A stretch of 64,000 nt of DNA, from assembly GCA_977030845.1 (NCBI GenBank), contig OZ365118.1, positions 19,158,001 through 19,222,000 on the forward strand, in the 5' to 3' direction. Of the stretch, positions 57,001 through 60,000 are shown piece after piece. Origin of the DNA: Fimbriosthenelais zetlandica. Its lineage: Eukaryota. The notes below the pieces were generated by a model, which saw only the letters and a list, made by a program, of their open reading frames with translations, searched no databases and was not told the DNA's origin. Position 1 is the stretch's first letter. Every line of letters begins with the position of its first letter. Made by a program: the position numbers and the translations under genes.

Positions 57001-60000
57001 CGGTTGTGCGCGCGTGTGTACTTTGTACCAAGGAGCACTTCAATATCAGGGATTGTATTCTTTCTTCAGAATGTTTACAATTAGAACCACATTGTCGGCT
57101 TTCTCTCTGCCTCAGGTGACCTTTATGTAGAAGTCATTCTATTTATTTGCATGAAGGATATTGTGGGTTTGGGAGAAACGTGTAAATTCTCGTGTTGGGA
57201 GGGATAGTAGAACTATGATGATGGGAAGCATGTTTATATATAATGAAGACCTACACAGACTGGCTCTACTGCTGTTATATGAGGTTATCAAAACAAAGCT
57301 GAATAGTAACAGTAGTAGGTAAACAAAAAACCTTATCTATTCATTCAACATATGATGGAATTTCCCCTCAAAATAAGGTTACATTGGTGGCATTGTATAT
57401 GTATAGTGTATCAAACTTTCCCAATTTATGTCTGCATGATTTGATAATCAGAAAGAGATAATATTATATCCTCAAATATGCCACACTATTCGGAGAACAT
57501 ATTTTCAGGGGAGATTCTTAATATACATGCAACGGAAATTTCTATTCTTTAAGAAACGACTACTGAGTCCTTGATTTAAAGAAAGAGTATCATTTGGTAC
57601 AATTCTTTGAGAATGAAGTCCACTTCATACAACTTGATTTGAACCTGTGATGCCATATGAAAAAGTAATAATCAGTAGTCTGTGAATAGAAATTTAACAT
57701 TTTACTTCCTTATACACATCTATGATACTAATGACTATTTTTTCTTTCAATCCTCCATTTAGTTATCTAGCCCAAAGACCCGGTGCTCTGCGGATACACT
57801 AATCCGGATGTTGATGGAGCATGACATGCTAAGCCTGCAAGAAATTGTCCAGACCTGGTATGACATTATGTGGTTTGTAGCCAGATTGTTACCCAGATAT
57901 GCTATTCACCTTCAACCTCTTCATTCAGTCAGTGGGGAGTGAGAACTGACCATATGCTTTACATGGCTAAAGAACGAATGTCTGGTTGGTAAGTGAGCCC
58001 TTGCCAAGTTGAGTAAGGAAGTGGGTCCTGTGGCCTGCTTTGCTTGGGTTAATACAATTTTTTCAGACATTCAGAATGGATAAGAGTCATGACTTCTGAC
58101 CGCCGTGTAAAATTTAAGCATACTGTAATTGACATGGTTGATGTAAGCAATATTTTGGAAAAAGATCAGAATGCCGTAGGGAAGAGACGGCTTTAGAGTA
58201 AAAAGAAATTATCTTACAGCAATAATGGTGGTATTGATGATTATCTGTCTCAAGAGATATTATCTAAGAAACTTTTCTCTTTCATATAGTTGGGTGAATC
58301 TCAAGCTCAGCGCGCGTTTTACGTTTGGCGCAGCGTTTCTTGCAAGCAGCGGTCGCATGCGGTGTAAGATGCCTGTCCCCTTCTCACCACAGTTGACATG
58401 CGCGCATTGTATGACAACTGTGGCCTTTACAACACCTTAACTACTTTGAAGTGCTCAGCCATCATTGATCTGAACAATCTTTAATGTTTTACTCAAGCGC
58501 AGAGTTTGCATTGAAGTTCCAAACTTATATATATATATTGCTTTTTTCACATTTGTAAAACTCTTTGTTTGGTGCAGTACTTCAAAGACCTGTAACTTAC
58601 TAAGGTATCAACCTGCTATGAAATTGTTATAAAATCAATGGGAATAGAGATTTGACCTGGTGTGGTTTCTACTTGTCTTATTTGAGTTAATCAAGGCACA
58701 CGCATCTTACACATCCTTCAACGTGTATGCTACACGTGCGCATTAGCAGGGCAGACGGCGCGGACGCTGGCGACATTCATCCATGTACTCTTAACTAACA
58801 CTCTCTCTTTCTTCCCTTTTTTTTGTCCCTCCTTTGATTTCTCCCCTGGGGAATCATTGTACCCTCTGCTGGTTGCTCTCTATTGGGCGTACTACCGGCT
58901 TATCTAGGCTTGTTACCTGAAGGCCATCGAGACACAACCCAACTTTGCTGTCGCCTGGAGCAACCTAGGATGTGTATTCAATGCACAGGGCGAGATCTGG
59001 CTGGCCATTCATCATTTTGAGAAGGTCAGTGTCTCCACATGTGCCTACTGGCTATTTGCATCTTGTTTCGTGGATATCTGTTATTGTGAATTGTACTCTG
59101 ACTTTAGGAAAATCAAGATATATTGCAATACTGATTGAATATTTCTCTTTCAGGCAGTGGCATTGGATCCAAACTTCTTGGATGCTTACATCAATCTAGG
59201 CAATGTCCTCAAAGAAGCCCGTATATTCGACAGGTACGTTAAGTTTCCACTAATTGCTTTATAACTCACATTCTGGAAACTCGGGGGGGAATTCACTTGA
59301 AAAACTGTTAAGATACTGAGAATGACCATCTTTTTGCAGGGCTGTCGCCGCCTACCTGCGAGCACTCAACCTCAGTCCTAATCATGCAGTCGTCCACGGT
59401 AACCTCGCCTGTGTTTATTATGAACAAGGGTGAGTACTTGTGCATTTACTCTCCAAACATTCTCTCTTGTACTTGAATGTTTTCTACATAACTAATACTA
59501 ACAAAGGATGCATTGGTCTAATGTTGCTCCTTTATTTCAGCCTTATTGACTTGGCCATTGATACGTACAGGAGGGCCATCGAACTCCAACCAAATTTCCC
59601 TGATGCCTATTGCAACCTGGCCAACGCCCTTAAGGAAAAGGGAAAGGTAAATGTAAATGCCGCCACTTATTCCTTCCATTGGTATAATTCCTTCTGAGTT
59701 ATTGTCCCTTTTTTGTTGTAGTCTTAAGGTTTCCTTGTCACCCTTCCTCATCCCGTCTCCCTCCTCCCTCATTCTAGATCCAAGAGGCGGAGGAATGTTA
59801 CAACACGGCTCTGGCACTCTGTCCTACCCATGCTGACTCCCTCAACAACCTGGCTAATATAAAGAGGGAACAGGGCAACTCTGAGGAGGCTGTCCGTCTC
59901 TACACCAAGGCTCTAGAGGTGAGGACTGAATACCCCATCCTATCCTAACTCTTACATATAGGTGCTGGATCATTTCTTTAATTTCTCTACTATGTGAATC

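Follow-up and report, generated by a model that had tools for sequence, protein, structure and literature searches.

We think it quite probable that intron 4 of the gene that encodes O-GlcNAc transferase (OGT) in Fimbriosthenelais zetlandica carries a conserved, non-coding cassette exon, and that this exon is the invertebrate counterpart of the decoy, or poison, exon of vertebrate OGT. The gene lies in a stretch of 64,000 nucleotides (nt) of contig OZ365118.1, positions 19,158,001 to 19,222,000, which was analysed at its full length and is called the window below; its + strand holds most of OGT. The evidence comes from the anatomy of the element, from its conservation among invertebrates, from the annotated use of such exons in other lophotrochozoans and from a motif match to the donors of the human decoy. 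The sequence comparison suggests that the OGT decoy switch predates the vertebrates, and points to a bilaterian origin.

In human cells OGT intron 4, at 3.3 kb, belongs to the detained introns and is retained more as O-GlcNAc increases; a 526-nt intronic silencer is needed for that retention (Park et al. 2017 PMC5588854). Overlapping this silencer is a cassette of 143-153 nt that is unannotated and has two acceptors separated by 3 nt and two donors separated by 7 nt (Parra et al. 2018 PMC6097662; Govindan & Conrad 2025 PMC12017769), and retention is lost when the splice sites of this decoy are mutated or masked (Parra et al. 2018 PMC6097662). Published work on the OGT decoy describes it as rarely included, its main effect being detention of the intron. 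When included, it makes the transcript a substrate for nonsense-mediated decay, and poison-exon inclusion is a further route reported for human cells (Tan et al. 2020 PMC7261177). Both the dependence on decoy splice sites and the O-GlcNAc response are known for human and mouse cells only. The element is reported to be conserved "from fish to mammals", with the silencer region traced as far as jawless fish, and its absence from Drosophila is also reported (Park et al. 2017 PMC5588854; Parra et al. 2018 PMC6097662). The literature that we searched holds no report of an OGT decoy exon in any invertebrate.

A preliminary description of the window, made from its letters alone, had placed in the middle of intron 4 a TACTAAT branch site, two AGs ending at 57762 and 57770, and donors at 57858 and 57989. 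All of these lie where it put them (Table 1); the branch site is a perfect consensus, and its A precedes the G of the first AG (57761-57762) by 31 nt. When exon 4, the cassette and exon 5 were joined, each of the four exon forms (95, 87, 226 and 218 nt) gave a premature stop, and did so by the routes that had been claimed: the forms starting from the 57771 acceptor run into TGA at 57822-57824, the form 57763-57857 changes the frame, so that a TGA is met near the start of exon 5, and the form 57763-57988 meets TGA at 57940-57942. The pair of donors proposed for the element needs amending. The first (57858) is conserved, but the conserved second donor is one that the description did not list, G/GTTTGTAGC at 57872/57873 (GTG/GTTTGT; a slash marks the splice junction), 15 nt after the first and in the context GTG/GTTTGTAGCC (57872-57882), whereas the distal TTG/GTAAGT (57988/57989) found no counterpart among the relatives compared. 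With the 57873 donor counted in, all six combinations of acceptor and donor lead to a stop.

The second decoy acceptor was also said to share its last 8 nt with the real exon-5 acceptor, which is correct, as TTATCTAG ends both (57763-57770 and 58900-58907). This sharing is not seen in Ridgeia, Lingula or the nemertean, and may be either chance (about 0.04 by a rough count) or a species-specific mimic. The element is single copy in the 447-Mb genome, which rules out its being a repeat or a transposon. An Rfam scan gave no match within intron 4, leaving a structured RNA gene or a small nucleolar RNA (snoRNA) host without Rfam support in the intron.

Ten OGT loci were compared: the window, a scallop (L003), a gastropod (L007), a nemertean (L008), an abalone (L009), two cartilaginous fishes (L010 and L012, the sharks below), the hemichordate Ptychodera (L011), the brachiopod Lingula (L013) and the annelid Ridgeia (L014). 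The species of L008-L010 and L012 are those that we take them to be from assembly accessions and partial record names. In all ten animals the orthologous intron 4 lies between the same pair of exons and is 2.5-3.3 kb long, in genes of 13-81 kb, and wherever a cassette could be placed its acceptor falls about 1.6-1.9 kb after exon 4. The length of intron 4 is thus held while gene size varies six-fold from annelid to shark, and the geometry of the intron itself looks to be under constraint.

At the same place in this intron of about 3 kb we found counterparts of the cassette in Lingula, the nemertean, the scallop and the gastropod as well as in Ridgeia (Table 2), and these cassettes are about 80-110 nt long. 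A [T/C]ACTAA[T/C] motif lies upstream of the cassette in seven of the ten animals, two of them the sharks; the gastropod has GACTAAC and the abalone none. The Ridgeia copy also has tandem acceptors (TTAG/TTGTAG/) and the same exon-body block, GCTAAGCCTGCAA, as the window. In an unbiased scan the window element was compared with all 260-nt tiles of each intron 4, both strands included, and the best tile was the one over the cassette in Ridgeia (78; median 27), in Lingula (60) and in the nemertean (57). The best hemichordate tile (51) lay within about 100 nt of the proposed cassette; in the scallop, the gastropods and the shark the best tile lay off it. When the scan was reversed and run along the window intron against Ridgeia, the tile at 57729 was the best conserved (72; median 41, standard deviation 8). 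In an alignment of the window, Ridgeia, Lingula and the nemertean, TACTAAT, the T runs, the acceptor, TGGTA and TTTG.A are invariant. Conservation of the splice sites in relatives, on which the preliminary description had let its reading depend, is therefore found in Ridgeia, Lingula and the nemertean, and the homology of the window element to the annelid, brachiopod and nemertean cassettes is clear. A further short motif, TCAGTCAGT, stands about 45-55 nt after GGTTTGTA in both the window (57924-57932) and Lingula (L013, about 4450), and may be another conserved block downstream of the donors.

Table 1. Features of OGT intron 4 and its flanking exons in the window (position 1 is the first letter of the window; a slash marks a splice junction).
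Feature	Position	Strand	Remarks
OGT exon 4	56040..56108	+	translation ends ...GRLDEAK; phase 0; donor AAG/GTAAAA
Host intron 4	56109..58907	+	2799 nt; 15-28 times the neighbouring OGT introns (98-183 nt)
Branch site TACTAAT (perfect consensus)	57726..57732	+	sole occurrence in intron 4
T-rich pyrimidine tract	57733..57760	+	between branch site and acceptors; T runs invariant in the four-species alignment
Tandem acceptors	57761..57770	+	AG at 57761-57762 and 57769-57770; TTAG/TTATCTAG/
Core cassette (putative decoy/poison) exon	57763..57857	+	95 nt, or 87 nt when the second acceptor is used; all forms meet a premature stop
Exon-body block GCTAAGCCTGCAA	57828..57840	+	identical in the Ridgeia cassette
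First decoy donor CTG/GTATGA	57858..57863	+	TGGTA invariant in window, Ridgeia, Lingula and nemertean
Candidate second decoy donor GGTTTGTAGC	57872..57881	+	GT at 57873; matches the human second decoy 5' splice site G/GTTTGTA and the shark, Lingula and nemertean copies
Distal donor TTG/GTAAGT	57989..57994	+	second-best donor score in the intron
Real exon-5 3' splice region	58755..58907	+	151-nt AG-free stretch; AACTAAC at 58793-58799; weak proximal tract
OGT exon 5	58908..59024	+	phase 0

Table 2. Splicing signals of the intron-4 cassette in the window and in five other lophotrochozoans.
Locus	Branch site	Distance to AG	Donors
Window	TACTAAT	31 nt	CTG/GTATGA and GTG/GTTTGT (15 nt apart); TTG/GTAAGT distal
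Nemertean	TACTAAT	33 nt	three close donors, CTG/GTAATG, GCG/GTTTGT and TCA/GTAATT
Lingula	TACTAAT	33 nt	GTG/GTATGA, GGG/GTTTGT
Ridgeia	TACTAAT	38 nt	GTG/GTATGA, ATT/GTAAGT
Scallop	TACTAAT	57 nt	CTG/GTATGC, TTG/GTAATT
Gastropod	GACTAAC		single annotated donor, GAG/GTATTG

In other lophotrochozoans an exon at this position is annotated and, in one case, can be followed through the splice. Short RefSeq isoforms of OGT in the scallop, the gastropod and the nemertean have unique N-termini joined exactly at ACYLKAIE, the start of exon 5, and the coding exons that give these N-termini lie in the middle of intron 4, 1.13-1.24 kb before exon 5. The N-terminus of the scallop isoform is reproduced letter for letter by exon 4, read from an out-of-frame ATG, followed by the cassette (5521-5614) and exon 5; it therefore represents a transcript in which exon 4, cassette and exon 5 are joined, and in the main reading frame that cassette brings a stop. 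A further class of scallop isoforms (L003; P0335, P0338 and P0340), in which M is followed directly by ACYLKAIE, implies another upstream exon that ends in ATG and is joined to exon 5. Three bivalve-like cDNA contigs (Logan; L004, L005 and L006, from SRR22671418, SRR27896754 and SRR27896761) carry 355-757 nt of the unspliced 3' end of intron 4 and are spliced at every border from exon 5 on. This pattern could be what a detained intron 4 leaves behind, with an internal start of transcription as the alternative. Gene callers report N-terminally cut OGT proteins of 846-857 amino acids from these contigs.

The link to vertebrates runs through the sharks. The most conserved block of intron 4 between the two sharks spans about 300 nt at 95-100% identity, and contains TTTACTAAC (TACTAAC) followed by a T tract, the acceptors ATAG/AAG/, where 3 nt separate the two AGs, a cassette that measures 125-135 nt, and the donors ATG/GTAACGG/GTTTGTAGCACTGCCAC, whose two GTs are 7 nt apart. 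The morpholino directed at the human decoy, read as its reverse complement, is ATG/GTAACGG/GTTTGTAACTGCCAC (Parra et al. 2020 PMC7373989), and because the shark donors match this site we identify the shark block as the vertebrate decoy. The second donor of the human decoy was defined experimentally as G/GTTTGTA, within ATG/GTAACGG/GTTTGTA (Parra et al. 2020 PMC7373989), and the second donor of the window, G/GTTTGTA, matches it. In the window, the nemertean, Lingula and both sharks, each whole locus has a single occurrence of a composite of ACTAAY, a gap and GGTTTGTA, which falls within intron 4 on the sense strand; chance would give 0.08 occurrences per 64-kb window. The distance from exon 4 to the cassette acceptor is also similar, with 1584 nt for the shark against 1654 nt for the window. 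We see the link to vertebrates at the level of motifs only, as TACTAAY and G/GTTTGTA at what appear to be equivalent positions, and on this footing we consider true orthology with the vertebrate decoy exon likely. Further blocks of the shark intron (L010, 18053-18440, 19317-19440, 19950-20010 and 20419-20470) are 90-98% identical between the two sharks, and no counterpart of them was seen in the invertebrate introns.

The resemblance to the vertebrate OGT decoy extends to the whole arrangement. The gene and the intron are the same, the intron lying between the exon that ends in ...GRL(D/E)EAK and the next; it measures 2.8 kb in the window against 3.2-3.3 kb in vertebrates, and the acceptor stands at a similar position after exon 4. 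Both elements are unannotated, non-coding cassettes with tandem 3' and tandem 5' splice sites, which in the window are read from the sequence, and both combine a premature stop in every form with a second donor G/GTTTGTA, a perfect TACTAAY branch site and a weak real exon-5 acceptor. The window exon differs in having an unrelated and shorter body (87-110 nt, against 143-153 nt in human), donors 15 nt rather than 7 nt apart and acceptors 8 nt rather than 3 nt apart. The vertebrate intron also has further conserved blocks, including a 397-nt ultraconserved element in mammals, whereas none were found in the window.

Decoys have been described in other detained introns, among them SF3B1 intron 4, SNRNP70 intron 7, ARGLU1 and DDX39B (Parra et al. 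2018 PMC6097662; Pirnie 2017). These too are cryptic exons with a stop, located far inside a retained intron of more than 1 kb and often provided with several competing sites, and it is recognition of the exon, not its inclusion, that keeps the intron unspliced; they belong to other genes, however, are unrelated in sequence and have a reported conservation to fish at most. The poison exons of SR-protein genes are likewise stop-carrying cassettes between detained introns that serve homeostatic feedback, a parallel drawn by Tan et al. (2020 PMC7261177). They differ in being bound by the product of their own gene, whereas OGT is an enzyme, with sensing thought to act through splicing factors such as SFSWAP.

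Several observations weigh against our interpretation. Searches for sequencing runs, made with the intron region and with an exon-rich stretch, listed no RNA or DNA run of this species. The composite pattern was derived after three of its sequences had been seen. Two sequences of 250 nt often share some 8-mer by chance, and for this reason the vertebrate link rests on an 8-mer at an equivalent and clade-conserved position. Profile hidden Markov models between the lophotrochozoan and shark elements were not significant: seven-species, nemertean-plus-shark, shark-only, Lingula-only and nemertean-only profiles did not find the window element, and a four-species lophotrochozoan profile did not find the shark element, matching the hemichordate at the expected place with E = 1.8. 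The one significant profile match to the window (E = 8e-4, four sequences) is biased, as the members of the profile were partly chosen by shared motifs. The bodies of the invertebrate and vertebrate exons are unrelated; blastn of the introns gave no significant match to any relative, only the two sharks aligning with each other; the scallop and gastropod copies are divergent, and abalone intron 4 has no recognisable copy. About nine in ten random 90-nt inserts would, by our estimate, also give a stop, so that this criterion by itself weighs little. The RefSeq isoforms are automatic models, of which only that of the scallop proves inclusion between exons 4 and 5, and the intron-retaining contigs could instead start at an internal promoter.

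Site strength belongs among these points as well. The sites of the element had been described as stronger than the real 3' site. By a crude consensus matrix, applied to intron 4, the decoy acceptors do exceed the real exon-5 acceptor (6.1 and 5.8 bits, against 4.9), but they do not stand out within the intron, ranking 6th and 8th of its 158 AGs, with the donors 2nd and 7th of 166 GTs; by this measure the sites are good yet unremarkable. A simple finder of exons, pairing acceptors with donors, did not rank the cassette first in the window. The same finder also missed the annotated cassettes of the scallop, the nemertean and the gastropod, and as an unspecific tool it was not relied on. It is conservation, and not the strength of its sites, that raises the element above chance.

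Of the other explanations, the first is that the cassette arose independently in lophotrochozoans and that its motifs are convergent, selected for example by the same conserved factor or small nuclear RNAs. The lack of significance of the profile searches between lophotrochozoans and sharks is what would be expected in this case, as are exon bodies with no relation to each other and of unequal length (about 85-110 nt against 125-153 nt). We nevertheless regard convergence as unlikely, given that the exon occupies the same intron at a similar distance from exon 4, that its parts follow the same order (TACTAAY, T tract, tandem AGs, tandem GTs and a second donor G/GTTTGTA(G/A)C), and that the hemichordate copy looks intermediate.

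A second explanation takes the element for a poison cassette and nothing else, spliced in at some rate and removed by nonsense-mediated decay, with no role in the detention of intron 4. The premature stop in all forms, the scallop, nemertean and gastropod isoforms that join the exon to exon 5, and the inclusion route reported in human cells (Tan et al. 2020 PMC7261177) are all compatible with it. Against this, the human element is rarely included and mainly detains its intron; tandem sites in competition, a weak real acceptor that follows a long AG-free zone, and a large intron whose size is conserved are in keeping with the design of a decoy; and intron 4 is retained in otherwise spliced contigs from bivalve-like RNA. 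A role restricted to poisoning seems to us rather improbable.

It is very improbable, in our estimate, that the element is an alternative first exon or internal promoter that gives an N-terminally short OGT like the mammalian mOGT. The short RefSeq isoforms, with unique N-termini starting in an intron-4 exon, could be taken in this sense, as could the bivalve-like contigs that begin inside intron 4. In the window sequence, however, no ATG in frame with exon 5 precedes the donors at 57857, 57872 or 57988, on which ground a coding alternative first exon was rejected. Read-through from the intron is closed as well, by the in-frame stop that the exon-5 acceptor supplies with its TAG, and the scallop isoform begins at an ATG of exon 4 that is out of frame, which marks it as a transcript that includes the cassette and not as one started internally. 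Finally, a chance cluster of cryptic, functionless splice-like motifs, to which the unexceptional site scores, the exon finder's preference for other pairs and an estimated 0.7 expected occurrences of TACTAAY in 2.8 kb (our figure, from base composition) might point, is hardly credible because the same signals are conserved at the same intron position in annelid, brachiopod and nemertean, a cassette is annotated there in nemertean, scallop and gastropod, and the composite motif, with 0.08 expected, is unique in 64 kb.

OGT is single copy in the 447-Mb genome (79 contigs), which rules out a comparison with a paralogue. The translated window exons are about 85.5% identical to vertebrate OGT, 86-88% to mollusc OGT and 88-90% to OGTs from marine transcript contigs. 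The OGT protein of the window itself had no entry in the protein collection searched, where the marine contigs came nearest. In the protein tree the window and the marine transcript contigs form a group that is sister to the annelid Ridgeia (support 94/87), within a lophotrochozoan cluster, which makes the animal an invertebrate and probably an annelid. An AG-free stretch of 69-194 nt precedes the exon-5 acceptor in nine of the ten species (151 nt in the window, where AACTAAC lies about 110 nt upstream of that acceptor), and ACTAAY lies about 70-120 nt upstream of it in the window, Ridgeia, the gastropod and both sharks. This arrangement suggests a conserved distant branch point at the exon-5 acceptor.

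Elsewhere in the window, the intron before exon 4 has a weak C/D-box snoRNA-like Rfam match, snoR77Y (55880-55966, - strand), which at 22.7 bits against a gathering score of 52, and E = 0.81, is most likely chance. The upstream gene has a long open exon (48864-49415, + strand frames) with a tandem short unit rich in proline, serine and threonine, which appears as repeated SLTPACR in one frame and also lies within a 634-codon open frame (48449-50350).

By analogy with the vertebrate element, we suggest how the cassette of the window could work as a decoy. The strong branch site and T tract would recruit U2AF and U2, and the tandem donors (57858, 57873 and perhaps 57989) would recruit U1, so that the cassette would be defined as an exon. 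The resulting exon-definition complex would then pair unproductively with the exon-4 donor and with the weak exon-5 acceptor and its distant branch point, and intron 4 would stay in a nuclear, untranslated transcript. Occasional inclusion of the cassette would bring a premature stop, and the mRNA would be lost to nonsense-mediated decay. Detention and inclusion would both lower the amount of productive OGT mRNA, and would thereby offer a feedback handle on the level of O-GlcNAc. The preliminary description had proposed either a decoy that blocks removal of the intron or a decay cassette that tunes OGT. The match to the known vertebrate element, the homologous cassettes and the annotated isoforms support such a role; for this species we infer, from the same analogy, that the cassette is used, that it promotes retention of the intron and that it responds to O-GlcNAc.

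Among cryptic exons that regulate the amount of an essential enzyme by keeping an intron from being spliced, the OGT decoy exon is the best studied. The literature that we searched puts its origin within the vertebrates, with none in flies. Recognisable copies now appear to exist in a brachiopod and a nemertean as well as in an annelid-like animal, and probably also in a hemichordate, and annotated cassettes occupy the same position in two molluscs. The element would thus be among the very few non-coding regulatory elements that can be traced across Bilateria.

It is the comparison over this distance that may tell which parts matter, since what survives amid the drift is the branch site, the tandem sites, the GGUUUGUA donor and the geometry of the intron. 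We lean, if only slightly, towards the idea that selection over more than 500 million years has kept a small kit and not the exon body: a perfect TACTAAY, tandem acceptors, tandem donors of which the second is G/GUUUGUA, an exon-5 acceptor that is weak and has its branch point far away, an intron of some 3 kb, and a decoy about 1.6-1.9 kb from exon 4. This kit may represent the minimal working parts of a decoy exon. The small, compact introns of these invertebrates offer natural minimal versions for reporter work on decoys.

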